Assembly (NCBI GenBank): GCA_009103225.1
Contig: RHPI01000193.1
Span: 124,001 to 188,000, forward strand
Length of the DNA stretch: 64,000 nt
Direction of reading: 5' to 3'
DNA from: Chlorokybus atmophyticus
Taxonomy: Eukaryota; Plantae; Mesostigma and Chlorokybus algae
Part shown: positions 6,212 through 61,988 of the stretch, one piece after another
Numbering within the stretch: the stretch's first letter is position 1
Layout of the letters: each line of letters starts with the position of its first letter
The notes under the pieces: model-generated
Seen by the model: the letters and a program-made list of their open reading frames with translations, nothing else
Database searches by the model: none
What the model was told of the DNA's origin: nothing
Position numbers and translations under genes: made by a program

Positions 6212-8969
6212 TTACGATCATGATGTGATGAGGCAGCACGTGGAGGTTAATGTACCAAAACTGAATGCACAGCAGTGCAAAGCTTACGACATTGTCGTAT
6301 AAGCAATTGAAAGACCTTGACCGGATTTGGACGCAACTTCTTTCGTTGACGGTCTTGGAGGTGCTGGCAAGACATTCCTCTACAACACCTTGCTTGCATA
6401 TGTGCGAAGCAGACGACGTGATGCAATTGCTGTTGCGTCATCTGGCATTGCGGCATTGCTATTGGAAGGTAATCAAGGCGTATGATGTTATTGCTCTGAA
6501 CGCGACCCCACATATGCATTCAGCAAAATGAGTACAAGCAGGCTCACATAAGTTAAGGTTGTGCAGGTGGAAAAACAGCACTTGAGGTTCAACATCCCCA
6601 CCACTGGGCTGAGTGCAACATCGACTTGCAACATTTTCAGGGGCAGCTCCTTGGCGAAGCTAATGATCGCCGCGGAGCTAATTGGTTGGGACCATCATGA
6701 TGAAGCTTCAATGATGAACAAGCTCGCGCACGATGTGGAGCCGGATCAAGGTAATGAGGCTGCACGTAAACATGCGTGTGCAGACGCTGCAAGCTGCAAG
6801 AGAATCCGGAGCAGAGCAGCAAGAGTTTAGCGATTTTTTTGCAGCGCATCGATGACGATCATCATGATGAGCATGTGTTTTCTGACACAGGGGAGGAGAT
6901 GGTGCGTCAAGACGCCGACCTTAACTGAAAAGCTGGCAGTCTCGAAGGTTTAATCGAAGACATGTACGGTGAATTGCGTAATCAGCCGACACTGGAAGCT
7001 CTAGCCAAGTACGTTATCAACCGAGCAATCCACACGCCCAAAAATGTAATCATCGACGAGATCAACACGCCAATGATGGCACCTTTCAGCGATAGTACAT
7101 ACCGGTGGGCATACTAACATATCTGCAGCCGCATGTAAACATTATACATATATGTGAAACATGCCACTTACCCGCCACACTGCGCAGATGAGGAGAGGGT
7201 ATACCGCAGTGCTGATTCTGTGCCACCAGAGGAGCAAGTAAACCATTACCCCATTGAGTATCTCAACAGCATTATGGTGTCTGGCTTACCTCCACATGAA
7301 CTGCGTCTCAAGATAGGCAGCCCAATCATGTTGTTGCAAACTATGACTGATGAGCTGGCGAACGTCACGTGTCTCTGTTGCAAAGGCCTCGTGCAGCATG
7401 CGATCTATGCTGAAGTGGCTATGGGACCGGTCAGGCAGAAAAGTCTTCATCCCTCGACTAATGATCACGCCCCCAAATGTGGAGGGTATGCCGTTTACGC
7501 TGAGGTGTAGACAATGCCCGATACGCGCAGCTTTTGCCGTGACCATCAACAAGTCTCAAGGCCAGACCTTGCGCAAGGTAGAAGTTTACCTGCATGAGCA
7601 TGTTTTCACACACGGTCAGCTGTATGTCGCGCGTTGGTGGCAAAGCGCGAGTGCGCGTACTAGCGACAAGTAACGTGCAGCAAAAGAGAGGCGAGCCCGC
7701 AGTGGTGTACATTAAAAACGTTGTGTATACAGAAGTTTTGTCTTGCAATGCTTGAGTTGGATATGTGTATAGGTAACGCTAAAAAGGTGTATCTATTCTA
7801 ATGCACATTCGTGATACATGATGTACGCATGCTGACATCCAGTATTAATCTGTATTGTTGAAATGATATGTGAAACATTCATTCAAAGCAGCCAAATATA
7901 CAAATATAAAAAGCAGCCTTCACAGTAATAATCCTCGTATCGCATATTGTATCCTTGCATACGATAATGATATCATATATAATGACCCAAGAGTGCGCAA
8001 CAATTGCAAAGCATTGTTGTTATAGCTCTCGGCCACAGTGTGACGCACAATGCTGTCAGCTGCTCCAATGTCCGGATGCCGCCGACAAGTTGGAGACTTC
8101 GTCGGCGAACGCTGCATCGACTGCTATAGATACGGTCAGTACGGACAGGATAAGAGCGGCTAGTGCCGACCGTCGAGTATAACGACTGCAGTCTCGCCGG
8201 CCACTAGCAGCAGCGGCAGGCGCATTAGAGTTGGCTGATACCGGACACATTACTTCAATCGATCGTTTTGTGACAGATTGCAGATAGGACGATGTGTCGG
8301 TGTTACTTCGCTCTCACGTGATACTTATATGAGACGGTTTCGGAAACAGTCAGCATCATCTTTGACTTGTTTTAGACAAGAGCAAGGGCAAAAAGACAAA
8401 GAGGAGTAAATATGCAGTAGCAATAGGTTTGACTTGGGTTGTGTTTGGCATTAGGCTATGATGACAATGATGGCACTGAAGGGGTTGGATCCATATAACT
8501 TAAGACGGTATTGGCAGCAGTCCAGAGTTGTATTGATAGGGCCTAGAACAGGCCAGGCCAGGCCACGCCAGGCCAGGGGCAAGCCTGGTGGGAGTCAAGC
8601 TGGTGCATGCTGGCTGAGACAAGCTCCCTCTAGTCATACATTCTTTGATTCTATTCAACCCATTCTGCCTTCAGGCACAGACAGTGACACAGACAGTCTC
8701 ACCATTCAACCATTAGCCCATTCTTCACTGCAATAGCAGCATTCCTTGTGAAAACAACACAGGGACAACATTCTTGCTGAAACCACAAGCCAAAACATAC
8801 GGACTCCTCTCATCAGAGCCACACAAGCACAGGTACGCTTGCATTCAGTCAGTTGGTTTTTCTTCACTTGCCACTTGAGTGCGACGAAACATACACATCA
8901 CACACAACTTCGATGTACCCCCAACCATCTTGACTACTGTACTCTCATCCCTGTTAGCAGACACACGAC

Positions 8970-11900
8970 ATGGCGGGAACACGCGTGTACTCCCGCTCGA
9001 CATCCGCGCTGCTGGCGCTGATGCTGTTGTTGCTGTCCATTAGCACCGCCTCAGCGCAGTTGATATCCGCATCAGGCCGTATCATCTGCGACGCGTGTCG
9101 GGACGGCGGGTTCTCCCCTCAAGTGTACCCACTGTTCAACGTGTCGATGAAGATCACCTGCACGGACAACAACGGGACCGTGCTCGTGCAGAGGTGGCCC
9201 AAAACCAACGCAGACGGCGTGTGGGTGGCTTCTCTCACCTCAATCCAATCGGCGCAGGCTGTCGGAAAAGTACTCGCCGGGTGTGACGTGCAAGTGTATA
9301 AGACCGCTGTTGGACAAATTTGCAACGGATACACTGGCGTCACGGCCTGCAGCAGAGACTACTTCCTGCCGCCGGTACGTGTTTGTGACACATGTGTAAA
9401 GCTGGATGAGTGCATGTCAGTGCATCTGTTCGTGTATGTGTGCGCGCGGGCGTGTGTCTCAGTCTCTGTTTGATGTGCATACATACAGACATGTCGAGCA
9501 GACAACATACGACAAGCTCACAGTGTCAACTGGTTGTACTGAGCAAGTCACTAAGCTGCTCTTCATTATACAAAGATCTGTTACCAATTAACCAACACAC
9601 AACTACTGTCCTAAGCGTACCTCTGCCAATCAGGTCTCTGCGGTGGAGTACCCAACATGGGTTGGTCCAGACCAGTGCTACACGCCTGCGGGGACCCTCC
9701 CGTCCATTTGCAACCAACCTCCCCCGCCACCCCCTTCCCCTCCCTCTCCACCTCCCTCTCCCCCACCTCCACCCCNNNNNNNNNNNNNNNNNNNNNNNNN
9801 NNNNNNNNNNNNNNNNNNNNNNNNNNNNNNNNNNNNNNNNNNNNNNNNNNNNNNNNNNNNNNNNNNNNNNNNNNNNNNNNNNNNNNNNNNNNNNNNNNNN
9901 NNNNNNNNNNNNNNNNNNNNNNNNNNNNNNNNNNNNNNNNNNNNNNNNNNNNNNNNNNNNNNNNNNNNNNNNNNNNNNNNNNNNNNNNNNNNNNNNNNNN
10001 NNNNNNNNNNNNNNNNNNNNNNNNNNNNNNNNNNNNNNNNNNNNNNNNNNNNNNNNNNNNNNNNNNNNNNNNNNNNNNNNNNNNNNNNNNNNNNNNNNNN
10101 NNNNNNNNNNNNNNNNNNNNNNNNNNNNNNNNNNNNNNNNNNNNNNNNNNNNNNNNNNNNNNNNNNNNNNNNNNNNNNNNNNNNNNNNNNNNNNNNNNNN
10201 NNNNNNNNNNNNNNNNNNNNNNNNNNNNNNNNNNNNNNNNNNNNNNNNNNNNNNNNNNNNNNNNNNNNNNNNNNNNNNNNNNNNNNNNNNNNNNNNNNNN
10301 NNNNNNNNNNNNNNNNNNNNNNNNNNNNNNNNNNNNNNNNNNNNNNNNNNNNNNNNNNNNNNNNNNNNNNNNNNNNNNNNNNNNNNNNNNNNNNNNNNNN
10401 NNNNNNNNNNNNNNNNNNNNNNNNNNNNNNNNNNNNNNNAAGGCCACCTCCCCCTCCCCCACCTCCTCCTCCCCCACCTAAGATGGCTCACGACCCCTCA
10501 CCTCTCCCAGACACCAACTTGTTCGACACATTAAAGCCAACCCACCCGAGGATTTTAGTTACCGATGACGGCGTGCGGAACGTGAGGACGGCGTGTACGT
10601 ACAGCGGGCCAACGTTGAGTTATATTCCAGGGTGGTGTAATGTGACCTACCAGCAGGCGTATGCGGCTGCGAGTCAGAAGATGGATGTGGGAATGTTGCT
10701 GAACTCGGCGAGGGCGTTCCAGGATAGAGTAGGGATCATGGCGGGAACATATCTGGTAAGGCTGTGATGCGTGTGCGTGTGCGTGTGGATGTGGGTTTGT
10801 GTGTGTGTGGGTGGATGGATGGATGGGTGGGTTTGTGTTTGTGTTTGCACTTGTGGGTGTACGTGCACATGTGCATGCATGCGTGTCCACGCAATGCGTA
10901 GTGTGTCCGTGTGCATTTGTATGACACTCAAACCCAACTCCATTTGCAGATCAACAACGACACATCCCTCGCTGCCACCGCGCGTTCGGACGCCTTATTG
11001 GTTGCGAGTTTAGACTTAGTAACCTGGATCGGCGACCGCAACCCCGATCCCGGTTACTTGAACACGGGTCCTTACTTGGCCGCATTGTCCTTCGCCTACG
11101 ACTGGATGTATGATTACCTATCAGAGGACGATAAGAACAGTATGTGGGACGCCGTGCTGAACAAGGCGTTCTTGCCTTCGCTCCAGACGGACTATTACTT
11201 TGCGAACAACTTGGATTATATCGCGCAGCTGGATAATAATATCGCCATCAATGGACTGTTTGGGTGGGTGCTGGCATCGCTAGCCTTTGCTGAACGCGAC
11301 CCTGTACTCTGCGAGAATGTAAGCTGTGTGTTGTATGTATCCGTGCGTGTGTGCATGCACATGTGTGTGTGTGCTTGATGAACATAAGCACCCATGCGCG
11401 CGCATGTGTGTATATGTTCATCACGCATGCGTGCACACATGTGCGCGTACGTGTGCATGTACAGCACACGTGCATGCGCTTGAGAGAGGGGGGATAGTGT
11501 GTGTATGTGGCTATGAGTGCACCATGCAATACACCAACTCCTCCCCCTCCCACACAGATCCTCCGTCGTGCTTTGATGGCCGTGTGGCGCACCACGCTGA
11601 TGTACAGTCCCACCGGCGGTTGGACCGAGGGCACGACGTACCTTTCGAACACCGGCATGAACATGGCGTTCGCGGTGTCGTCGCTCGAGAGCGCGCTTGG
11701 GACCGACCTCGGAGTGATAGATGACGGAAGAGCCATGTATGCGTCGGCGTATTATAGGATATATACCATATCACCGCAAGGAGACAACGCGCCCTATTCT
11801 GGTAGGTTGGCACACCCTGTTGCTAATGGCATACAGACTGGTTGTCGTGGACACCCAAGCACATGCATGCACGTATGCACATACGTACACATACACGCAC

Positions 11901-14900
11901 ATGCATCTCTGCAATATGTTGCAAACATACGCATATGCATGAATGCACATGCAGATGTGTCCGCGTGTGTACAAGCCAACACACGCGCACATACTTTCAC
12001 ACCCACGCACACACCCAGACACCCACCTCATCACGCAGATGCGCACGAGGAGGCCATCTCCAGCCAATGGAGTATGTACGCCGCCCGTCGCTTCAACGAC
12101 ACCTTCTTAGCTTTCAACGAGCGTCGCATGGGTCTGACCGGCGGCGTGTACCGTCTCTTCTGGTTGGGTAGCATCCCCACCTGGCAGCAGTGGGTTGCCA
12201 CACCACCCCCACTATCCACATACCCACCTCTAGACAGCCGCAACCAGGGATATCGCGTCGACGCCGTGTCTTTCCGATCCGCGTGGCAAGACGGATCCGC
12301 CGGATATCTATTTATGAGGGCGGGACAAGGACCTAATAAGGGAGGTGGACACCAACATTTAGATGCTGGGAGCTTCGTTTACGAGTCCAACGGCGTGCGT
12401 TGGTTTATCGACTTAGGTGCGGATGATTATTTGATCCCTGGTTACTTCAACCCGAAGAGGTTCAAGTTTTATCGCACGCGCACGGAAGGACACAACACTT
12501 TGGCTATAGTTGGGGGTGGGATTGTTCAACAGCCACTTTACTTCAACTCTCAGCCACTGTTGACAACCACACCCATCACGTCAACGTACGCCAACGCAAC
12601 ACGCTCGCAGGCTGTTGTTGACTTGTCGCAGGCTTACCCGGACACGGTTTCTGTGCAAAGAGGAGTTATGTTGTTGAAAGATGTCCAATCTGGAGGGAGA
12701 TTGTTGATACAGGATGAGATAATTTCTGCTACACCTGTTGATGTTGTGTCGATGTTCCACACGCGGGCCGCCGTGAGCGTTGCCTTGGACGGGAGGAGTG
12801 TACAATTAACTCAGGGTGGAGTCACTTTGATAGGACAGATATTAACTCCTGCAGACGCTTCATTCTCGGTCATTACAACAGACCCAACACCACTCAACAA
12901 CTCCCCAACATTGCCGGAAGACCCCAACACAGGCGTGTCCAACTTGATCGTGCGGCCGGGTGGGTTTGTTACATCCACCCGCATAGCAGTCTTCTTCCAA
13001 CTTTCCAACAGTACTCTCTCACCCCCACAACTTGTGCCATTATCAAAGTGGGCTGTTGAGACGTGCAACGGCATCGATGACGATAAAGACGGGTATATCG
13101 ACAACGAGCCCGGCACAAAGTTGCCTCTAACAATGACGTGTCAAGCGGGTTGTCATCAAGGCGTGCAAGTGTGTGTTAATGGGAGTTACATTGAGTGCAA
13201 TGTGAAGGCTGATCCCGAAATCTGCGACGGCGTCGATAACGACTGCGACGGGAGTATTGACGTACCTGTATCAGGGAGCTCGCAGATACAACTCAACTGC
13301 AACGCCGATATCAACGAGGTGTGCTACCATTCAGCTTGCAGGGCGCTGGCCAAAGCCACCGATATCGCCCTCGTCCCGCTTCAATCAGTGTGGGCTTTCA
13401 GACACATCAACAGCGATGTCCCCAACTGGAAAGATATCTCTTTTAACCCTGCAACAACAACAGGATGGGTCTCGGGTCCCGCGCCGATATCAACATCGCC
13501 TTCTCCACCCTATCCAGCAAACACCAACATGACACAAGTGAGGTTGAATGGGCAATACTCACCCACAGGCTACTTCATCAGAGACTTCGTTACACCCAAC
13601 TACAGTGGCATTGTCACCTCTTTGGACGTGCAAAGCCTCGTGCAAATGGGAGCTGTTGTGTGGGTGAATGGAGTTGAGTTGATCAGACTCAACATGCCAC
13701 CCGGCGTGCCCGCGATGTCAACGTGGGCCACAGCCAACAACCCAACATACAACTCCAACACGGCCAAGCTCATCAACATGACGCTCCTCCCAGCGGATGT
13801 CAACAACGTCAACAACAACCTGCTCAAGCCAGCGGGACAAGTCAACCGCCTCGCTGTGGAGATGCATAAGACGAGCCAGTTCAACAACTTACAGCTGGAG
13901 GCGTCACTCACAGCAACTGTGGCTGCGACGTGTGCAGACCCGACGCGCTGCATACAAAGGTAATATGCGTGCGTGTGTATGTGCGTGTGCGTGTGCGAGA
14001 GAGAGAGTCTAATATGTGGTGTTGTGCAGTACTGGCAAGCTGAGTGTGTTCAAGACTTATAGCGCGTGGAGTTACAAGGATGACGGGCAGCCGGACCCAT
14101 CATGGACTAACCCCTCTTTCGACGACTCCACATGGCCCTCAGGCAAGTGCAGCACACTACCATCTGGTCCACGCTGTGTGCACACGCATGACATGACACA
14201 TCCTCTTCCTCCTCCAGGCAAGTCTCCGCTCGGTTTCTACAACAAGGTTCCCTGCGCGGACCAGACGACCGTCGCGCGATCGCACCAGACGACGACCTAC
14301 TTCCGAAAGACGTTCGCGCTCACCGGGACGCACTGCGCGCATACGTACTGGGCAAACATACGCACGCGCGACGGATTCGTAAGTGTTGATGTGCGTGCGC
14401 GTGCGTGCACGCGCTCGCGCAAGCGTGCGTGTACTTGTTATTGTTATGACAAAGTCTTACTCAAAGGTCGATTATGCTTATATCCAGGTCATGTGTGCGC
14501 GTGTGTGCGTGTACACACCACACACATACACATTGATGTTATGACAAAGACTTGCCATGTTACGTCTCCAGGTCATGTATGTGAATGGGTATGAGGCGTT
14601 GCGGGTCAACATGCCGAGCGGGGATCGCGTTGTGATGAACAATGGGACTTACGCGCTCGGCCCGGGCGACGGGACCAGTTTTGTGTCGTATCCCTTGGCT
14701 GCCGGGCTCATCTCTGCAGACGGACCACAAGTGAGTGTTGTGCGTGTGCACTTGTGTGTGCTTGCACGTGCACGTGCATGATACAAGTACACGCACACCT
14801 GCACATGAACGCGCGCATACACGTATGGATGCACGCGCACACAGTCGTGCACACGTGCGAGTGTTTTTGTACCAGTGTGCGTTTGCGTGCACACGCGCAC

Positions 14901-15149
14901 TGGTACAAACACACACGCGTACACGCACATGCACAGGCACATACACACACAGACACATACAAGTTATGAGAGACATACTAAACTCACATGTGTACCCCCG
15001 TACAGTTGTTGGCGGTTGAGGTGCACGAGTTCATTGGCGCCCCGCCCTTCATCACGTTCGACATGGAGTTCGGCATGCAGGCGGACGCGGCATGCTTGAA
15101 GGCCGCCGGCACAGGGGCGTTCATACCACTCGCGGGCGAAATAGTATGA
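8970..15149 (+). CDS. Secreted multidomain protein: signal peptide + PAC/Pollen Ole e 1-like domain + Pro/Ser-rich linker + heparinase II/III-like lyase + 2 MopE-like repeats + 2 beta-sandwich domains
   Basis: Exons 8970-9374, 9634-10755 (contains N gap 9776-10439), 10950-11318, 11558-11801, 12039-13959, 14030-14142, 14218-14378, 14572-14730, 15006-15149. Splice phases are compatible, the sum is 4638 nt, and there are no internal stops in sequenced parts. Motifs: hydrophobic leader ending TASA-Q; CDAC..C..C..C..C; YSPTGGWTEGTTY; GGHQHLDAGSFVYESNGVRWFIDLG; RTRTEGHNTL; ETCNGIDDDKDGYID; EICDGVDNDCDGSID; YFRKTF..DG.VMYVNG..LLAVEVHE. Confidence 0.9.
9776..10439. other. Assembly gap within the poly-Pro/Ser coding repeat
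   Basis: 664 N flanked by C-rich PPPSPP-coding sequence on both sides. Confidence 0.95.
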
Positions 15150-16699: not shown

Positions 16700-17000
16700 N
16701 NNNNNNNNNNNNNNNNNNNNNNNNNNNNNNNNNNNNNNNNNNNNNNNNNNNNNNNNNNNNNNNNNNNNNNNNNNNNNNNNNNNNNNNNNNNNNNNNNNNN
16801 NNNNNNNNNNNNNNNNNNNNNNNNNNNNNNNNNNNNNNNNNNNNNNNNNNNNNNNNNNNNNNNNNNNNNNNNNNNNNNNNNNNNNNNNNNNNNNNNNNNN
16901 NNNNNNNNNNNNNNNNNNNNNNNNNNNNNNNNNNNNNNNNNNNNNNNNNNNNNNNNNNNNNNNNNNNNNNNNNNNNNNNNNNNNNNNNNNNNNNNNNNNN
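16700..17000. other. Assembly gap beside a poly-G tract
   Basis: N run followed by GGGGGGGG. Confidence 0.95.
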
Positions 17001-23413: not shown

Positions 23414-26400
23414 ATATGGGATGAATGCGCAGGTTATGATCCCGTACGTTGACGAATATGAGGAGTTGGAGGAGCGACGAGCGGCGTTGGCGGACTAAGG
23501 GTTTCGCAAGTGTGATAAGTGCCGAGCAGGGAGGTGACATTGAGTGCGTGTGTGAACGGTGCTGGCGGCAAGCAGTGCTGTGTTGAGTGTTGCGACAGTG
23601 GTTGATAGGGCACGTGTGTATGGTGTAAACTTCGTAAAGTATACATACGTGTGCACTCTGCATGATACCACTATGCTTGCTATGCTCATGCCAACCACCG
23701 CACTCCAGCAACCTCAACGCTCATTTGCATAGCACAGCCAAGCCATGTGTGCGCGCGCCGGGAAGGGGGGGGGGGGTCTGCAAAACGATATTTGGCGACC
23801 NCCTGCATGCGCAATTGCATGCACATGCGCAAGGGGACACATTTGGGCTCCACATCGCTAGAGAGCAACATAAGCTCAGCACACCGGAGTGTAGAGGATA
23901 TGCGCAGTGCTGTTATGTGAGTAGCTGCTTTAACCTACATCAAAATTATGATGCATCTCTCGAAGGTAGAAAGGTATGGTGAGATCAGGTGGGACTGCAA
24001 ACTCAAACGACAACAAGTCAGTGATCACTTTGTGCGTGTGTTTACACTTGTTCGTATTGGTAAGGCAAGCAGTACTGGTGAGGTTGGTCCGATGTTGAGA
24101 CCTAGCAGAGTGAATGAAACAACACTGCCTTTAATATAAAACTCTTGCATCGTGTAGAGCGCATACCGTTATATGTACACGGGTGCAGAGTGCAGCGAGT
24201 GCATGGGTTATGTGGTGCTTAGAAGATATATGCGTGCTCGTACAAAGGGGTAGCGAGAGCACAAAGTTGTAACACATGTGTGATAGCATGCGTAACTCAG
24301 TTGCTTGTACTCACTTACGTGAAAGGAAAGCTCCGCAGGGCATTAAATGTAATCGATGTAGCAGGCGGTGGCCACAGTATCACCGATGGCGGTGGCCACA
24401 GTACCAGCGGTAGCAGTGGCACAGCCACACTGAGCCAGTCTCGCCCTAAGCCACCGTCAGGTCGCTGGCGGCTTTCTCAAGGCGGAGAGGAGGTGGTTGG
24501 CGGTTTGGTCGCCTCGCAAGTTAGGGGAGGCGGAGGCTTCGCTAGTTGGCAACCTACAGTTAGCAACTAGCACACCGTTATTGGCCTGGTGTCACGCGTA
24601 TAAGGCTGGCTAAAGTCATTCTCTGTTCCTTACTGATGTAAGTAAGATGAGACCGGGTGCGTTTTCCATATCATAAGCATGTGTAATGCTTGTGGGGTGC
24701 TTCTCACGTGATCTGCTCTTGAGCCTATGAGGCCTTGAGTGAGATAAACTACACAAGGTATTGCATATCAGCAAGCACAGAGCTGGTCGGTACCATTGAG
24801 ACATGGCCATGTGAGCCATGTGTCCGCATGTGTGTGCATATGTTTGCATGTGCATATGTCCGCATATGAGTGCATATGTGAGGATATGAGGTACGTACTA
24901 GATGTATGCATGTGTATGCATGCATGCGCATATGTGTGCATATGCGCGCATATGTATGCATAGGGATGCATAGGTATGCATGTGTGTGATGTCCTAGGCT
25001 GATATGACCAGCCAAGGACGTTCACCATGTCCGAGGCTGATGTGTGATTAGTCTTCGACATTAAACAAGAGGTCCAAGGGCTGATGTGGCAGCCCTAGAC
25101 ATGAGTTGTGGTCAACGCAGCCATGACAAGGCAAGTAGCCTTGGACTTGGATGTTCTAGGTCGGAGAGCAGCAAAGAGGGGGTATATGAACGGCCTCAAC
25201 AAGTGTTGAAGGAGCTCAGCATGTGCATACTCGACTCTTGTGTGTGGGGTGCCTAGTTTGGTTGTTCAAGGGGCTCTCCCTCTCATCCCATGTGGGGTGT
25301 GATGCTTGTGGCAGCTCTGCACATGTGTGTGGGGTGTGCTTGAGTGTGCATGTGTGTGGGAGCTGAGTAGAGAGGTTGGTGGCATCCTCTCCTTCCTTGG
25401 TGCGGTGCTGTGACTTCCCCTTCAAGGTACTTCACCGTGTGTTGCTGGTCGGGCTTCCACAAGTAAGTCCTTGTGCTTGTGCATGAGTTTGCCAAGCCGT
25501 CCAGCAAGTAAGTGAGTGGTATCGCTACACCAGGTGTGTGGCGGGAATCCCCACATTCTGCTTAATGTTGCTGAGTCTTTCCACATCACAGAGTCTTGGG
25601 ACAAAGGTAAGGTTGTGCAACTGTTGCTGGCTAGTGTTGTTAGCATGGTATGTGTAGACAGGAACGGAAATTTTTTGCGCGTGCAAGTATATGACTGCGT
25701 GCACTTGCACACCTTCAGCGCACTTATATACTGATCTTTACTGCAATGAATATAACTTACAGTAGCGATACACAATAGCAGTCTCAAGCGAAGAGGAGCC
25801 ATGCTGTGTTGCACACCATGCACAATCCATGCACAATCACGAGGCGCAAACACAAGCAAGCAATGATAAAATTAGGCAGGGGCCAAGGCAGAGCTTTACA
25901 CAATGAAGGCAACAACTAAGAAAACACCCTAGACATCTAGACCCTCTAGTAGTGGGCATTGGCAAGACAGGGTAGCATGGCAAGAGTCAACCACCTACAG
26001 AGGGCAGAGAGAGCGCACAAAGGAGAGGTGAGGCGGTGTGGGTAGCGGTGGCATCATGCAAGACGACGACGCTTGTAATGACATCGACTGCAAGGCCACC
26101 TGCGCTGGAGTGGCGGCCGCAATTTCTTGTAACCTTGGTGCGGTCTTACCAACAATGCCTGCTCGCACCCCTCAAGACCAAATAACACGCTGTCAGCTAA
26201 TGGCTGCAGCCCCCTTGTGGCTCAGCAGTCAAGTTTTAACAACTTACGCAACATAAGTCAGCAGCAGTGAGCACCGCACTTAAACCCCGCACATTGCATT
26301 AAAACAGAGTAGGAAAGTACCAAGCATGACATAACACTTGACATACATGCGGGCAGAAGTAATCTGCTCCCCGCACTCCTTACCATTCACTTACCTCACT

Positions 26401-33700: not shown

Positions 33701-36700
33701 GATACGAGACCAATCGTGGACGGAGGAGAAGGCATTCCGACTGATCCTACGATACTTAAAGCACGAGGCATACATCGTCTACGAGCAGATCGTCACCAAG
33801 AGGGAGCTTGCAGCAGCTGGCTCGGTGGAGGAACCCGCGTTGAGGTCGGGAGGAGCGCCGCCATCGACAACATCAGGTATGGAAGAGCTCTACAAGAGGT
33901 TGAAGAAAGCATTCAAGCCCATGACAGCTGCAAAGATCAAGGAGCTGACTTTATTCCAGAGGAGAGAGGGTGAGACACCAAGGATGATGTACGGGAGGAT
34001 GTACCAACTGTTGGAGGACACCGAGTACTCGATCTTGAAGGACAAAGCAGCCGCGATCATCTATGTGGAGCAGCTGGAGCAACACCTATCAAAAGGAGGT
34101 GAAGGTTGCTATGGCGGGACAAGGATTGTTGAAGGAGTACTCGTTGCAGCATGCGTTTGAGATGGCGGAAGCGGTACAGCACATGGTGGAGTATAAGAGG
34201 ACTATCCTAGCTCTAAACAGAGAGGAGAGCAGCAGCAAGGAGGCTAAGCAATCGACGACAACGACGGAGGGTGGCAACGGCGATGACAACACCGACGGGG
34301 CGGAGCTGCTACGCATGCGGTGCAGCCGACCACATTCAACGCGATTGTCCGAGGAGGGGCAGCAGCTCAAGGGAGGCTCAAGCTGATCAGTGTGGGCATT
34401 GCGGGAAGACAGGCCACATGATGGATGAGGGTTGGAGCAAGCACCCGGAGCTGAGTCCAAGTGCAGGACGAGCACGAGCGGGGCGGATGCCGACGCAGCA
34501 GGTGATGATGGCGCGAGGGAGTGCCACGGACACGACACCGACGACGGGGGCAGTCACAACCAGCAACGAGGCTTCGGCGGAAGCCGCGGCATTGCGCAAC
34601 GAAGTGAAGGAGTTGAAGGCGGCCTTGGAGCAGCTGCAGACGCGGATGCAAGGCATGCCATTTGAGTACGAAGCGTACGTGGTGTGGCGAACATGGTGTG
34701 CAGCTGACGCGGTTGGCGAGCACTTGCCCGGCAAGGGGGTGGACTGCAACGCGCGCAAGGAGCTGGTCAGGACCAGCATGGAGGTGTTTGGAGTTGAGGA
34801 GAAAGTGCAGGTGTATCATGTGGAGACCATCACGACACCGGAGCAGCAACGCAAGGTAGAGGAGAAGATGGAGGTGATGCATACAGCTGCGCGCAGCAAC
34901 GACACCTTAGTTCTCACGAGGCCGGCGGGTGCGTGTGCGCGTGTGGCCGCGAGTGGCAATGGTGGACAACAAGGCAGGACACATCAGCATCGGGAGGTAC
35001 ATTCCGTGCTCGGTGTTGCTGAACACGGCTGCGCAGCCAGTCATGTTGGGTAGGACGGCAATGGAGGCATTGCAGCTGAGCGACAACGACCTTGAGCCAT
35101 GCCCATTCACTATAGAGACATCGTTGGGGGCGAAGGAGTTTGTTTGAGGGCGTACGAAGGAGCAGCTACCTATCAAGCTGTGCGGCAACGACAAGGGGGA
35201 GAGCTGCGTTTTGTGGATGCAATGCCTTGTGACGAACTCGACATCATTTGACTTGTTGATAGGACAAGATTGCATGTATCCGGTGGGGATGTGCATTGAC
35301 GATTGGTCCGAGACAGCATGTTTTCGTCCGCGATGGAGGACTGGCAGTGGCGTGAAATCTTTCATACCCTTACGACTACACTACAGGGCACGAGGACCGC
35401 GAGGGGACGCGATGCGGCTGATGCGGAAGGAGGCAGCGAGGAGCTACGCGCACAACGATGGAGAGTGGGATTGAGACAGTGTAGTATGGAGAACTACATG
35501 TGGCGAGTACTTCGGGGACCTCAGCCTCTCCAAGGGGGGTGGGTGTAGCATGTTCACTACACATGTAGCTAGACATGCTAGTGTATGAGTAGAAGGAGGA
35601 GACATTGCATGAAGTTGGAGTGCTGTGTATGAGTAGCAGCATGATAGACATGTGCTAGTGGGTGCATCGAAGTCATATGACAGTCGAGGAGACATGGTGC
35701 GACAAATCCACTACACTTGTCCACTTCCGTGATCACAAATGCATCATGCAGCTCACGTACCAACTGTTTATCCGAAGCCATGAACACTGGCGCCACTTGT
35801 TAAGCTGCTATGGCTACTGTGTTAATGACCCCAGCAGCTGCTTTCACCCTAAGCATCACTGCAGTCGCCCAGCTCAGGAACAGATCATGGTAGCCCCATC
35901 TCTTAGCATCAGCATCAGCATAATCATATACACCGCGTGTTATGGCTGCGATGAAAGCATTGACACACAGAGCAGTTAGTGGGCGATAATTGGTTCCAGC
36001 AACCAGTAAAGAAGCCAGCGTTGTTGATTGTAACATGGCATAGTCAAATGTCACAACATGTTCCAAACTAGTTTGGACATAAGGTGCATAAGCAGCTTTC
36101 TCAAACAAGCAGACAACGTGCATGACCCCCAGCTGCTCTGCAGCACACATGTGCAAAGTAACAGCTGACCGGTTGCAGATCACTTGCCGAAGGGTGCCCT
36201 TGTACTTACAGTGAATGAGTGGAGCCTACCATGTTGGCTCCACAGCGGATGGCAGCAACAGAGCCAATGCTGAATCTGCAAGCAACTGTGGCAAATTGAT
36301 TAAATCAGCCACAGCACTAAGGAAATCATTGTGTATCACAAACTGCTTGTTTGCCCCCTATCGTGGGTACCTGGTGTAGGCTGTTTGCACCTCCAACTTT
36401 AGGACACCTTGTATAAACCGGACCTATGCCTCCCTAAGGTATAGCTTCGCTGAAGTGGACTTATGAATCAAATTGAGCATGCGGTACAAGTTACGACGTA
36501 TGTACTCTTTCAGGTGCTCTGCTTTGAACACACCCTCTTGCATGCGACGTCCCAAGTATGCGTCGTGTGTAATCCCTGTATGCATATACTCTTGACGCAC
36601 AGTCATAACATGTTGACGCATTTGCATGCGTGCTCGCCTGTGTGCAGCCCTGGGTCTCTTACAGGTCTTGGTCTCCTTGTTGTAGCCCAATGGTTGGTGC

Positions 36701-42270: not shown

Positions 42271-42328
42271 NNNNNNNNNNNNNNNNNNNNNNNNNNNNNN
42301 NNNNNNNNNNNNNNNNNNNNNNNNNNNN

Positions 42329-45172: not shown

Positions 45173-48100
45173 CTGTACCTTATTTCGCTGGCACATTTGC
45201 CTGTATACTGAAAGGAATGGCGCCGGCCATTGCCTGTCAGTGGCGGGCGAAGTGTGGCGGCGGCTGTGCTGGGGTTGACAGCTGCCTGCTCCCGCCACAG
45301 TGAGGCGGCTGTCAAGCTTTCCCCCGCCTCTTTTTGGCGGGAGAAAGCTGTCAACCCCAGGCAGCATGTGCGTGGCATGCACGTTCGTGTTCATGTTCAT
45401 GTGAGCGAGGCGGCCGGCGACAGCAGTAGCATCATGCATGTAAGGGTTGCGTAGGTACATGTACAAGGGTTTGGTTCTATGCTAGCTGCCTACTCTGAGT
45501 CGTATGCCTCTGTCCTAAGGGAGGGGGGGGGGGGGGGGGGGNNNNNNNNNNGGGGGGGGGGGTGTCTAGGGTGTGTTGCTCGCCATGCCCGCCACTTGGC
45601 GCCTGCTTGCTTGCCTGCATCGCTAGACCAGCTGCGCTCCAACTTGAACCTCTGCCACGCCGCCCACTCCACAAAGGGTTCATGGCCTTCACTCACCCAG
45701 CTCATGCAGTCCGAGTCCCACCTCCCTAAGATATCGAGCGCCTCCTGCCTTGTCTTCGCCCGCTGCTCCGCAACTGTGAGTGGTCTTTGTGCCTGCATTT
45801 GCTGCCTTGCTGCTGCTTGTTGCCTTGTAGCTTGTGCTTGACTCTGTGCATCTTGTCTTGCTGCTGCCTCTGCTGCCTTAGCCGCCCTCTTAGCTTCCTT
45901 CTGTGCTTGTGCTTCTGCTGCTTTGCGTGCTAACTCCTCGTTCCTTGCAGCAGCTGCCTCGGCCTTCTCAGCAGCTTTAGCCGTGCGCTAGAGCACGGCT
46001 AAGGCGCGAGCCTCCTTCCTCGCACGCACAGCCTCTTTCTCGAGCATTCATGATAAATGATACTGCCTGTCTCTGATCGGAGGGTGTGTTAGCCATTCTG
46101 TTGTGGCTGGTCTCACCCCTACTTTGCGCTTCTTTTTAGGCGGGGGAGCAGTGGCGTTGCTGGCTGAAGGCGCGTGGTTCAGACCAGAGCTGTCCTCCTC
46201 CTCCTCCTCGTCGTCTTGCTCATTGATGTTACCCTCCAGGGCGTCTGCAAGCACATCCAGCAAGCCCTTTGGGGGCTCAGGAGGTAAGTACTTGTCAACC
46301 GATGTGTCGTCCCATGGTGAGATGCCTGCATGCACAGGTGTTAGTCTACATGCACAGCATGTTAGCAGCTTGCTCACATGCATGTAGGTGACTGCACATT
46401 TACCACAAGCATGGAAGCCTGACAGAATGTTGCATGCACGAAGCAAGGAACAAGCAATCTCAAGAAGTCTTTATTAGGTAGGCTTCTAACTTTGCGGTGC
46501 GTGCTTAACCAGGCTTGATACTCCTTCTTGTAAGTGGCCTTGAAACTGCTAAAGCATGCTACATCAAGCACCTGAAGTCGGTGGGCTGTGTGTGGAGGCA
46601 ACACCAATACCTCCAGCCCTATCTCCTTGCACATGTCAATAGTGTCAACGCTGTAACGGCTCACATGGCCATCAGTGATCAGGAGGGCGGGGTTGCTTGG
46701 GCCAATGCCACCAGGAATGTTGTCGCGCAGGTGTATGATCCAGCTGGCGAAGTGCTCAGTGGTCATTCAAGCATTCTCCTGGCAACTCAAGGAGGCACCA
46801 GCAAGATTAGAGGCATCCGACCATTCTGGGTACAAGTGTTTGCCTGATAGGATGCATGAGGGGGGGATGGCATAGCCAGCACCGGTAACTGCAATCATGA
46901 AGGTGATATGCTGAAGAGCTCTAGAAGTTGCCAACTGAGCATATCTTGAGTTTCTACGCACACACACAATGGTAAGTTCTTGCATGTTGCATGCAACATC
47001 CACACACACTACAACATGCATGTTACTCACTTCTTGACTATGACCTCTGTGTTGCGCAGGGTGTTATCAGGCTCGATGCCGATCTCGTCGCATGAAATAA
47101 TGCGGTTGGGACCAATCTTTATGATGTCGTACACCTCCTTCAGCTTGCGGAAGCAGTCCTTCTCAATCCACCTTTTGAAGCTGCAGCGCCTGCTTGCATC
47201 CACCGGCTCTGCCTGCCTCTTACTCAACTTATGCCTCTTCATAAACGAACGCACCCATCTACCACCAGGTATGCCTTCCTTAAACAGTTTGCTGCGAGGG
47301 TCATTGCACAGCTGCTTGCCCACATGCACCTATCTCATACGCAGTCATAGCACAACCAATATCATTCTGCCAAGTCAGCAGTTGTACTAACTTCTCCTCC
47401 TCAGCGTTAGTCAGAACAGTTGGCCTCCCTACCCCCCTGCAACATGCTAGGTCTCAGCACAGCCCTCAGCATGCACAGGAATGCAACATTAACTCACTTA
47501 CTCTACTCACTTGTATTGTTCCAAACGCGCAGGGTCAGCCAGGTAATCCTTCATGGTGGACTCGGGAAGGCCCACCTGCCTGGCTGCCTTACACGCATTC
47601 ATGCACCCTTGCTGCACGGCAAGGATGGCGTCCTTTACTTTGGGCAGCAGGGCTTTTCTCTCCTTCTTATTCATATACGGGCCTCTCTTGTGTTAGTTCT
47701 GGAGCTCTTTCTCTCGGAGCTGCACTTGCTTGTTTGTGATGCGTTTACGTACCTGCCAGCAGAGTGCCCTAATATGGGCACAATGACACATGCTGGCCAT
47801 GCTGACAACAACCCGGGCTATGATGAACACTGAGCCCATAATAGAACAAAGCATAGCGTAGAGGCAGCAGTGGTAGCAGAACTCACTTGCGTTGTCATCA
47901 CCACCCTTGCAATGTGACCTTCTATCTCCTCAACCCCGTGTGCCTCACCTCATTCGCATGCTACCCATCACCCAAACTCTGCGTGTGTATGCTACCTAGG
48001 CAGCCAACACACAACACAACAATAACACAACACCAACAAACTCAGCTTGAAGCGCTAGACAGTGCAGCCCACAACACTAGTCAAGCCAACTTTGACTCTC

Positions 48101-48749: not shown

Positions 48750-50250
48750 TCCAAGGATCCCGTGAGGAGGAACAACTCAGCGACACTAACCAAAATTCCA
48801 GCAACCACGCCACATACCTGCCATTAAGGTGGACTGTGACAACTATCCGAGAAAACACGGCACACAACCCAATTGTACCTACCACAAACAGAACACAAAC
48901 CATACCCGAAACACCTCATGCTAGGCACCATCCGAGATAACGTCCAAGCGCCTTTCAACAAGCAGCTGGTTGAAAAACCTTCGCACTCTAGACTTGGGAG
49001 AACCACCTATCACTTCAAGCATGTTATAGCCAGCACCGATTTCTGCAAGCACATACTTTTACTCACAATTGGAAACAAGTCATCTAAACAACAACAAAGC
49101 TAACATACCATCTCTGGCCCAATACCGGAAGGCATAATCAGATGTTGCCAGGATAACATGAGCGCGCAAGGCATTTTGTTTTGTAATCGCTGTAAAAAAC
49201 CGCAACAAAGCATTGCGACTGTTGACATCAGTCCACTGACTCAGGACGTTGGCCTCGTCAATAACAATAGTGAGGAACTTGTTTCCACATCCGTCTCGTT
49301 TGCGCGCAGCAAACCACTGATCCAGCATCACCTGCGTTCAAACCAACACAATGATCACTACCACATCACACAAGCCTGCCATATGCACTCATAGACTCTA
49401 TTTTCAACATCACCTCGTAAGCATTCAATAATGGGCTGAACTCTGAACCACCCGTTTTGCGTTCATCAAATAGCATAGAAAGCAGTAACGCCAGCTCCTT
49501 ACCACCAATGGTTAGATCGCCAAATTGTGCTATTTTCTCCCGCAGACCAAGAGAGGAAAGGGATTGCTTAAAAACTTCAAAAATCTTTTGCCATGCATCT
49601 GGCGAGAGGGTGGAAGATAGCACAGGGAGGCTTTGCGTGATCAATGCTTTGACCATATCACCAGGGGTGATGACCGATGTCCTGCGACAGTCAATATAGC
49701 AACGAGTTTTGTAAGTACCCTTCGCCTCCATGAACTGTTGTAGAAGCCTGGTCTTGCCGCCGCTTCGGGGGCCGAGGAGAACTGTGATGTCTGTCGGCAA
49801 CCTCTGAGTGAGTTTATTCCGGTCCTCAAGCTCACTCTCACGATAGAAAAACGCAGGCTCTTTAGGCCAGTCTGCGGCAGCAAAGCAAGTCAGCAACAGA
49901 ACTTGCATCGCAATAGCGTGCCTATGCATACATCAGTCCAACCAGCTACAAGACTCAGCCTCTATAAACATCCTTACTTGTGGAAGTAATGGCACGAGTC
50001 AGCATCCAAGCACGCTATGGACAAACCAAAACAACATCATACACGCCTACACGCAGAATAAGGCTCGGACATGTCCAGCTTTCGCCGGTATCTTGAGAGG
50101 CGGGAGGAGGGTCGTCACCGCCGCCGCTGCTGAAGCGACGGTGAGGATGTGTAGTGGTATCGGGCGCCATCTTGCTGCGCCCAGGGAGAAGCATTGGCGG
50201 CGCCGTTGGCTTTCGCCGTGAAGGATGGTGGTTCCAGGGTAGTGGGGAAT
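48750..50250 (-). pseudogene. Spliced P-loop NTPase (archaeal-ATPase/AAA_16-like), probable pseudogene
   Basis: Exons about 49871-49414, 49331-49109 and 49040-48905. Motifs FFYRESEL; Walker A LLGPRSGGKTRLL; Walker B IVIDEAN; HVILATSD; EVIGGSPK. A TAG at 48921-48923 replaces an expected Trp. The 5' exon is uncertain. Confidence 0.75.
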
Positions 50251-60879: not shown

Positions 60880-60959
60880 ACGGTTTACGAAGGTGAGAGA
60901 GGAAGTGTGTGGGCGTTTACACTTTTCATTCGGAAGCGGAGTGTAGTGTGTTAGTGGAG

Positions 60960-61988
60960 ATGGAGGATGCTCGCATGGAAGAGCTTCAAGCTGCCATCTT
61001 AGCATTAAGAAAAGAGCTTCATCACACGCAAGCGGCGGCACAAGCACAACGCGAGGCGTATGAGCATGCGATGGCGCGTGTACAAATTCCCATGGCATCA
61101 AGCTCGCGCGTGCATGTGAAGGTGCCAAAGCCCAAGCCATTCAGGGGTCAACGTGATGGAGATGCAGTGGATGAATGGATTTTTCAAGTATCGTCTTGGT
61201 TGAAGCTCACGGAGGTGCCCACGCATCTGCACGTGGAGGTTGCAGCGACATTGCTTGAAGGTGCAGCACTTGTGTGGTGGAGGCATCGATGTACGCGTGT
61301 TGCAAACGGGTTGGCGCTACCATTGACCACCATGGAAGAGTTGGCACTGGAGGTCAGGCATCAATTTGTTCCCGTTGAGAGCGTGAAGGCCGCACGCGAC
61401 AAACTTGCAGCCCTTGTGCAAATGGGGTCGGTGATGGCGTACACGGCCGCGTTTCAGCGATTGGTGATGTCCATACCCAATATGACCGAGGAGGAGCAGT
61501 TGGACAGGTATACACGTGGTTTAAAACCTTTGGGGCGTAAAGAAGTGGAGCTACGGGACCCGAAGACACTCGCGGAGGCTATACGCATCGCGGAGCGTCT
61601 CGACGCGTTGTACTTCAAGTCCACCACAAGAAACACTGACTGGAGGCAAAGGCATGGTGATCAGCCCCGGGGAGGCTTTCAACATGCATGGAGACGAGGA
61701 GAACCAAGTTCAGCACTTGCCAATGGAGGTGGAGCTGACTCTGGGCCTGCACCAATGGAGGTGGGTGCCATACACACGCATGGAAGTGAGGCGAAGCACG
61801 GCGGACGTGGTGAAAGAGGTAAAGGTGTGCGCAAGTGTTATGCGTGTGGGTCGACGGAGCATTTGGCGTACGGATGCCCCAAACGAAGCACGCAAAGGCC
61901 AACACCGGATGGCAACCCTCGCCGTGATCGTCGCGTCAACACCATGGAGCAAAATGGCGTGGAGCAGGAAAACGACTTCCCCCAGTAG
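60960..61988 (+). CDS. gag: Ty3/gypsy Gag (capsid + CCHC knuckle), intact ORF
   Basis: KVPKPKPFRGQRDGDAVDEWIFQV; AATLLEGAALVWW; ARDKLAALVQ..YTRGLK; CYACGSTEHLAYGCP. Confidence 0.95.
   Translation: MEDARMEELQAAILALRKELHHTQAAAQAQREAYEHAMARVQIPMASSSRVHVKVPKPKPFRGQRDGDAVDEWIFQVSSWLKLTEVPTHLHVEVAATLLEGAALVWWRHRCTRVANGLALPLTTMEELALEVRHQFVPVESVKAARDKLAALVQMGSVMAYTAAFQRLVMSIPNMTEEEQLDRYTRGLKPLGRKEVELRDPKTLAEAIRIAERLDALYFKSTTRNTDWRQRHGDQPRGGFQHAWRRGEPSSALANGGGADSGPAPMEVGAIHTHGSEAKHGGRGERGKGVRKCYACGSTEHLAYGCPKRSTQRPTPDGNPRRDRRVNTMEQNGVEQENDFPQ

Follow-up and report, generated by a model that had tools for sequence, protein, structure and literature searches.

The 64,000-nucleotide stretch of the Chlorokybus atmophyticus genome analysed here (GenBank assembly GCA_009103225.1, contig RHPI01000193.1, positions 124,001 to 188,000 of the forward strand; hereafter the window) carries on its + strand a spliced eukaryotic gene at 8970-15149, which translates from the ATG at 8970 to the TGA at 15147-15149 with no internal stop. 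We consider it reasonably probable that this is one nuclear gene for a secreted modular enzyme acting on the alga's own acidic wall or mucilage polymer. Alignment to solved structures shows that the enzyme module belongs to polysaccharide lyase family 35 (PL35) with its catalytic residues intact. The predicted protein has at least 1,323 residues, about 1,500 if an internal assembly gap is coding, and would be arranged as a signal peptide, an Ole e 1-like disulphide domain, a Pro/Ser-rich rod, a PL35-type lyase, a MopE-type Cys-rich unit and two jelly rolls. An earlier sequence-only reading of the window had proposed a green-lineage Ole e 1-type domain fused to a bacterial-type lyase, and the domain evidence supports that fusion.

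Pfam assigns PF07940 (Hepar_II_III_C) to the lyase module with an E-value of 2e-16, together with a weak match to PF16332 (DUF4962/DSE-like_N). The (alpha/alpha)-toroid plus beta-sheet organisation agrees with the heparinase II/III fold that had been proposed, although the module, estimated earlier at ~750 aa, measures ~620 aa. Exon 6 matches the Protein Data Bank (PDB) entries 9O3Q (E 2e-19) and 8KHV (E 1.8e-15), and the whole module of a paralogue aligns over ~500-555 residues to 9O3Q, 8KHV and 8KHW (E 7e-29 to 1e-23), with both the toroid and the beta-sheet domain alignable. These three PL35 entries are the sole solved relatives of the module. Families PL12, PL15, PL17 and PL21, with which a comparison had been suggested, were rejected because PL35 structures alone match among the solved ones. 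Residue roles were taken from a mutagenesis study of GAGase II (PMC12088678), from whose numbering the 8KHV crystal chain is offset by 22, and residue conservation from an 84-sequence alignment of lyase homologues. The catalytic Tyr and His, the Asn neutraliser and the Mn2+ ligands are all present (Table 1), and the spacing of 54 residues between the second Asn and the Tyr is identical in 8KHV. All seven members of the algal clade that were compared retain the complete Tyr/His/Asn set plus four Mn2+ ligands.

At the N terminus, the signal peptide read earlier is borne out by a hydrophobic core at residues 12-22, with a hydropathy maximum of 3.09 at residues 14-24, followed by an A-S-A/Q cleavage-type site. 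It aligns with the signal peptide of P0045, which has the same layout; P0045 is a C. atmophyticus protein of 1225 aa (EukProt, JGI Chlat1 Chrsp6S07482) that is collinear with the window model from the signal peptide to the last residue. The six-Cys domain that had been described next is likewise present, with six Cys in exon 1 and two more in exon 2 that are conserved in this paralogue. The domain starts with the pattern G-R-I/V-x-C-D-x-C, is 53% identical to the N-domain of P0045 (E 4e-41), and keeps its six Cys invariant across three algal copies. PF01190 scores 33.7 bits on the N-domain of P0045 and 27.1 bits on that of a second paralogue, P0050, both above the cut-off of 23. In the Atlas search the window domain scores 0.92 to its nearest clusters, Streptophyta "Pollen Ole e 1/extensin", and a PDB fold search with its low-confidence model (pLDDT 60) placed Lig v 1 and Pla l 1 in the first three ranks (TMq 0.55-0.59, E 1e-3 to 4e-3), ahead of a fourth match (E 0.13) that is ~30-100x weaker. 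Collectively, the paralogues, the Atlas search and the fold matches indicate that the N-domain is Ole e 1-like. Wall binding is established for only some plant Ole e 1/PAC members.

By analogy with PL35 lyases, the Asn would neutralise the carboxylate of a 4-linked uronic acid, the His and Tyr would remove the proton at C5 and donate one to the leaving oxygen, the Mn2+ site would shape the substrate loop, and beta-elimination would yield a 4,5-unsaturated uronate end. The Pro/Ser-rich rod is probably hydroxyproline-glycosylated; together with the Ole e 1 domain and the jelly rolls, it would keep the enzyme within the extracellular matrix or direct it there. We infer that the protein is secreted and cleaves as a lyase, most likely on the glucuronic acid (GlcA)-containing sulphated "pseudo-pectin" of the alga's own wall or mucilage, for example at growth or daughter-cell release. 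The Chlorokybus "pectin" is anionic and sulphated, contains GlcA, galacturonic acid (GalA) and L-galactose (L-Gal), including beta-D-GlcA-(1->4)-L-Gal, and is digested neither by the land-plant pectinases tried nor by Driselase (PMC10953000); the Chlorokybus genome is reported to hold hardly any classical pectin lyases (PMC7027972).

The same protein might instead be directed at foreign acidic polysaccharides, such as bacterial exopolysaccharide, biofilm or other matrices in the subaerial habitat, and serve defence or nutrition, which we regard as unlikely, if the most serious of the rivals. To our knowledge, PL35 lyases have been characterised in bacteria only, as catabolic glycosaminoglycan (GAG) or alginate lyases; these are the nearest characterised relatives of the algal module, and family expansion, seen here too, is typical of enzymes meeting varied external substrates. 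However, an Ole e 1 domain and a Pro-rich rod are characteristic of PAC-domain proteins and hydroxyproline-rich glycoproteins (HRGPs), which as a rule stay in the plant-type wall, while the alga's own GlcA-rich sulphated polymer has no known endogenous degrading enzyme.

The gene comprises ten coding segments, with 182 aa encoded upstream of the assembly gap and 1141 aa downstream; the nine exons counted in the sequence-only reading hold if the gap-containing segment is taken as one exon. The open reading frame (ORF) is stop-free from ATG to TGA, as that reading had it, but cannot be called intact, since 9776-10439 is unread. Of the eight visible splice pairs, seven are of the GT-AG type and one is GC-AG (14143-14217, donor G/GCAAGT); the intron at 9375-9633 is a phase-0 GT-AG intron. 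All exon joins, that of the GC-AG intron included, fall in unbroken alignment to P0045, and the joins in the second beta-sandwich domain restore motifs that its bacterial copies have in common, DG/F-V-M-Y-V-N-G and G-P-Q/L-L-A-V-E-V-H (slash, exon join). Retention of the 75-nt in-frame intron 14143-14217 was considered and rejected: it would add 25 residues found neither in P0045 nor in the bacterial sandwich domains. A TG/CA-rich imperfect microsatellite (GTGTGCGTG-like) forms the bulk of seven of the eight introns (9375-9633, 10756-10949, 11802-12038, 13960-14029, 14143-14217, 14379-14571 and 14731-15005), in which TG, CA, GT and AC dinucleotides together occupy 42-54% of positions. No additional copy of the gene was found within the 64-kb window by tblastn.

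On the two sides of the gap the frames are set independently, on the left by the phase-0 splice between exons 1 and 2 together with conservation in P0045, and on the right by the downstream lyase. Both frames are Pro-rich at the gap, with P6-SPP-SPPP-SPPPP... at its left edge and R-P12-K at its right edge, and neither meets a stop between the gap edge and its conserved domain. The residues of P0045 that match the two flanks are neighbours in one polypeptide, so the Pro-rich stretch together with the gap counts as an insertion when P0045 is the reference. Because P0045 aligns from signal peptide to last residue with these flanks adjacent, a single gene is the likeliest reading, and continuity across the gap is likely on this alignment. 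The Pro/Ser rod named earlier is thus seen as a Pro/Ser-rich run at both gap edges, with SPP/SPPP motifs and the 12-Pro run flanking the gap, whereas most of the putative rod lies in the unread part. It is improbable that two genes lie here, an Ole e 1/extensin-like protein ending in the gap and a separate lyase starting from the ATG at 10483. The unread gap and an in-frame Met 14 codons past it would permit this arrangement, but P0045 and P0050 hold both modules in one polypeptide, P0045 aligns across the join, 12 in-frame Pro and no stop codon stand ahead of the post-gap Met, and no signal peptide follows it, unlike in the lyase-only paralogues P0099 and P0118.

The module might instead modify uronic acids without cleaving the chain, as a uronosyl C5-epimerase or another non-cleaving enzyme resembling animal dermatan-sulphate epimerase (DSE). 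Pfam now calls PF16332 "DSE-like_N", and epimerases and lyases of this fold both begin with abstraction of the C5 proton. Nevertheless, the matches were to PL35 lyases (E 1e-19 to 1e-29), no structure of an epimerase came up at E <= 1, and the full PL35 residue set is retained, which makes a non-cleaving enzyme quite improbable and leaves a PL35 lyase as the preferred assignment.

The gene is not unique but belongs to a Chlorokybus multigene family with at least seven public proteins, the source-checked eukaryotic relatives all being from C. atmophyticus (P0045, P0050, P0052, P0054, P0056, P0099 and P0201). P0045 is 57% identical to the window protein on exon 6 (phmmer) and 65% over the lyase module (tree alignment); its domains follow the same order, but the Pro-rich rod is missing and so is the greater part of the MopE unit. 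P0050 combines Ole e 1 and lyase modules as the window protein does, whereas P0099 and P0118, the latter of unverified source, consist of a signal peptide and lyase only. The fusion is therefore limited to some paralogues, and the absence of the Ole e 1 domain from the sister pair P0099/P0118 points to later domain gain or loss, or to truncated gene models. The architecture had been thought undescribed. No paper describing it came to light: our literature search found no PL35 lyase in a green alga, no Ole e 1-lyase fusion and no paper joining Chlorokybus with heparinase, or Ole e 1 with heparinase or a lyase, and the Chlorokybus genome paper with its supplements (PMC7027972) mentions neither PL35 nor heparinase nor Ole e 1. 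However, P0045 and P0050 already stand in a public proteome with the Ole e 1 plus lyase layout, there without a functional name, and for none of the paralogues did we find a functional name or published description. The window's own protein was not among the database proteins returned at 351-1118 aa and 674-2144 aa, and the public protein set may lack an annotation for the locus or hold it in pieces. The component parts are all of known kinds; what is new is the lineage that hosts them, their architecture and the expanded family.

To place the lyase, an unrooted tree of 84 lyase modules was built by IQ-TREE quick search. The window protein groups with P0045, P0050, P0052, P0054, P0099 and P0118 in a single clade (SH-aLRT 100), nested in a 97%-supported set together with Hymenobacter and a protein carrying a Por_Secre_tail (a type IX secretion system, T9SS, tail). 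The closest source-checked non-algal relatives are bacterial, namely P0003, which has a bacterial gene neighbourhood, Paenibacillus, Hymenobacter and Cohnella. The bacterial ancestry proposed for the lyase is thus upheld by an algal clade lying within bacterial diversity. Three introns break the module (10756-10949, 11319-11557 and 11802-12038), and GC content at third codon positions differs little between "plant-type" and "bacterial-type" exons (0.57-0.83), which argues for long residence in the alga. Together, these sequence features are consistent with a single ancient transfer from a bacterium to the alga, after which the gene was duplicated and domains were shuffled. A chimeric assembly or bacterial contamination, which the assembly gap between the "plant" and "bacterial" parts might have suggested, can be dismissed as extremely improbable, because spliceosomal introns lie within the lyase module and also the sandwich modules, composition is uniform, an independent public gene model has the same architecture, and eukaryotic mobile-element ORFs flank the gene.

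Downstream of the lyase, the sequence-only reading had placed CDGxDNDCDG repeats and a mainly bacterial beta-sandwich. The former correspond to a single MopE-type unit. Its bacterial affinity is supported by a 70-aa match at 57% identity (E 3e-23) to one repeat in P0046, a metagenomic VWA/MopE protein that itself scores 252 bits with PF11617, but the PF11617 scores of the window region, 24.4 and 22.8 bits, stay under the cut-off of 27. The C-terminal repeats were read correctly, in that the Cys-rich MopE-like unit is followed by two beta-sandwich domains of ~190 aa each that are homologous to one another. Neither is assigned to a Pfam family, and only a weak match to BetaGal_ABD2 (E 0.013) was seen. 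Homologous domains are carried by P0104, a T9SS protein of Bacteroidales, by P0084, a PL35 protein of bacterial type, and by the Closterium protein P0158. A Foldseek search with the AF2 model of the sandwich (pLDDT 78) gave 118 hits in the PDB at E <= 1e-3, the best of them glycoside hydrolase family 2 (GH2) beta-glucuronidases and galactosidases (E ~2e-5, TMq ~0.5); in the Atlas search, it scored 0.96 to unnamed bacterial clusters neighbouring CotH/LTD proteins. The copies in P0104 and P0084 and these bacterial clusters support the bacterial affinity claimed for the "YFRK...LAVEVH" sandwich. The jelly-roll domains probably bind carbohydrate.

Two layouts outside the Chlorokybus family bear on these C-terminal modules. 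Residues 196-496 of P0158, from a zygnematophyte (Closterium sp. NIES-68, GJP57087.1), are collinear with window positions 13052-13957 (316 aa, 31% identity, E 3e-33), and the Closterium protein holds a cassette of MopE unit, Cys-rich linker and jelly roll, plus two further jelly rolls. The MopE-linker-sandwich arrangement is therefore not confined to bacteria but is common to distant streptophyte algae, and the history of this cassette may differ from that of the lyase. P0084, from an NCBI metagenome-assembled contig (1801 aa, with PA14, Big and LamG domains), carries a PL35-like module with two jelly rolls of the same type, so the pairing of lyase and sandwich also exists outside the alga; in the tree, P0084 is not the closest lyase relative.

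Several points weigh against one gene for a matrix-acting lyase. The Ole e 1/PAC call rests on the paralogue scores, Atlas and fold matches, but a direct check of PF01190 on the window copy gave no Pfam match at E <= 10, and the all-beta AF2 model of the domain is of low confidence (pLDDT 60). With 9776-10439 unread, continuity and frame across the gap are unproven, and the proposed stalk rests on a linker broken by this gap. Words of exon 6 were present at no more than 12% in five sequencing runs, and at 6-8% in two runs that we guess to be RNA. The tree is unrooted, comes from a quick search and covers the nearest ~80 homologues only, most of them of unknown organism. Nothing shows that the pseudo-pectin has the O-4 substitution on its GlcA that beta-elimination needs, and related C5-epimerases use the same catalytic set.

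Table 1. Features of the PL35-type lyase gene in the window. Residue names in parentheses are GAGase II equivalents.
Feature	Position	Strand	Remarks
Start codon and predicted signal peptide, 29 aa	8970-9056	+	two Arg, Leu-rich core, A-S-A/Q site
Ole e 1-like six-Cys domain (remainder of exon 1)	9057-9374	+	
First part of exon 2, N-domain extension	9634-9717	+	two more Cys kept in P0045
Pro/Ser-rich rod, left part, reaching gap	9718-9775	+	SPP/SPPP motifs; absent from P0045
Assembly gap within Pro-rich linker	9776-10439	.	664 N, length estimated only
Pro-rich rod, right part	10440-10482	+	12 consecutive Pro, in lyase frame
PL35-type lyase module, ~620 aa	10516-13051	+	N-terminal alpha/alpha toroid and C-terminal beta-sheet domain
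Asn-Asn, neutraliser pair (Asn191/Asn192)	11235-11240	+	
Neutraliser Asn (Asn192)	11238-11240	+	83/84 homologues
Catalytic Tyr (Tyr246)	11639-11641	+	84/84 homologues
H-Q-H-L-D, catalytic His (His401) and Mn2+ ligands (His403, Asp405)	12350-12364	+	8KHV alignment
Catalytic His (His401)	12350-12352	+	84/84 homologues
Mn2+ ligand Asp (Asp421)	12410-12412	+	
Mn2+ ligand His (His457)	12491-12493	+	
One MopE-type Cys-rich unit, then short Cys-rich linker	13052-13360	+	unit between two CxGxDxD(C/K)DG motifs
Beta-sandwich domain 1	13361-13959	+	jelly roll resembling GH2 N-terminal sugar-binding domain
Beta-sandwich domain 2	14030-15146	+	four exons; introns 14143-14217 (GC-AG), 14379-14571, 14731-15005
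Coding segment	8970-9374	+	
Coding segment	9634-9775	+	left of gap
Coding segment	10440-10755	+	right of gap
Coding segment	10950-11318	+	
Coding segment	11558-11801	+	
Coding segment	12039-13959	+	exon 6
Coding segment	14030-14142	+	
Coding segment	14218-14378	+	
Coding segment	14572-14730	+	
Coding segment	15006-15149	+	includes TGA
Stop codon TGA	15147-15149	+	C-terminus aligns to final residue of P0045

Elsewhere in the window, an ORF at 7154-7510 (+), ~1.5 kb upstream of the gene, encodes a Pif1 helicase 2B domain (E 8e-11) and may be part of a Pif1/Helitron-like element. The ORFs at 60909-61988 (+) and 34271-35053 (+) encode retrotransposon gag/Ty3 capsid and zinc-knuckle domains, and the window therefore contains long terminal repeat (LTR) retroelement remains. 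An ORF at 49366-49929 (-) weakly matches ATPase_2/AAA_16-type NTPases, at an E-value of 3e-7 that does not reach the Pfam cut-off, and may be an exon of a STAND/NLR-like gene. Other assembly gaps lie at 16700-17000, 42271-42328 and 45542-45551, with single N at 23801, 26539 and 44967.

Whatever its substrate, a catalytically intact PL35 enzyme is present as a resident, intron-bearing and duplicated family in an alga at the earliest split of the plant lineage. More speculatively, and we put this forward as a tentative possibility, Chlorokybus may remodel its sulphated GlcA/L-Gal "pseudo-pectin" through an expanded, bacteria-derived PL35 family, some members of which are fused to native Ole e 1/HRGP modules. 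If true, the alga would possess an independent, GAG-lyase-like equivalent of the pectate-lyase system of land plants. Should the lyases cleave the pseudo-pectin, they would explain matrix turnover in the alga, provide a concrete bacterial gene transfer that shaped early plant cell-wall biology, and serve as a reagent for dissecting the structure of the polymer.

A comparison with known systems shows how familiar modules are combined in the window protein. Land-plant Ole e 1/PAC proteins (PF01190; Lig v 1, 6YOA; Pla l 1, 4Z8W; AGP31-type) likewise have a small secreted six-Cys beta domain, often beside Pro-rich HRGP regions, whereas the Chlorokybus domain is joined to an enzyme and its window copy is too divergent for Pfam. 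Bacterial MopE repeat proteins (PF11617) hold tens of units in repeat-rich matches, compared with one unit here. DSE, a distant member of the same fold superfamily with His/Tyr chemistry, is an epimerase and not a lyase, and no direct sequence match between it and the Chlorokybus module was detected. Among characterised enzymes, the closest likeness is to the PL35 GAG lyases (GAGase II, 8KHV; GAGase VII, 8KHW; the chondroitinase 9O3Q), which have a common two-domain layout, align over the whole module and carry the catalytic Tyr and His, the Asn neutraliser and the Mn2+ ligands at identical positions; in GAGase II, as in the Chlorokybus lyase, Asn and not His precedes the neutraliser. The Chlorokybus module differs from them in being eukaryotic, in its three introns, in an identity of only ~30-40%, and in its host, an alga in which animal-type GAGs are not expected. 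The protein that contains it is also far larger, the lyase being accompanied by an Ole e 1 domain, a Pro-rich rod, a MopE unit and jelly rolls.

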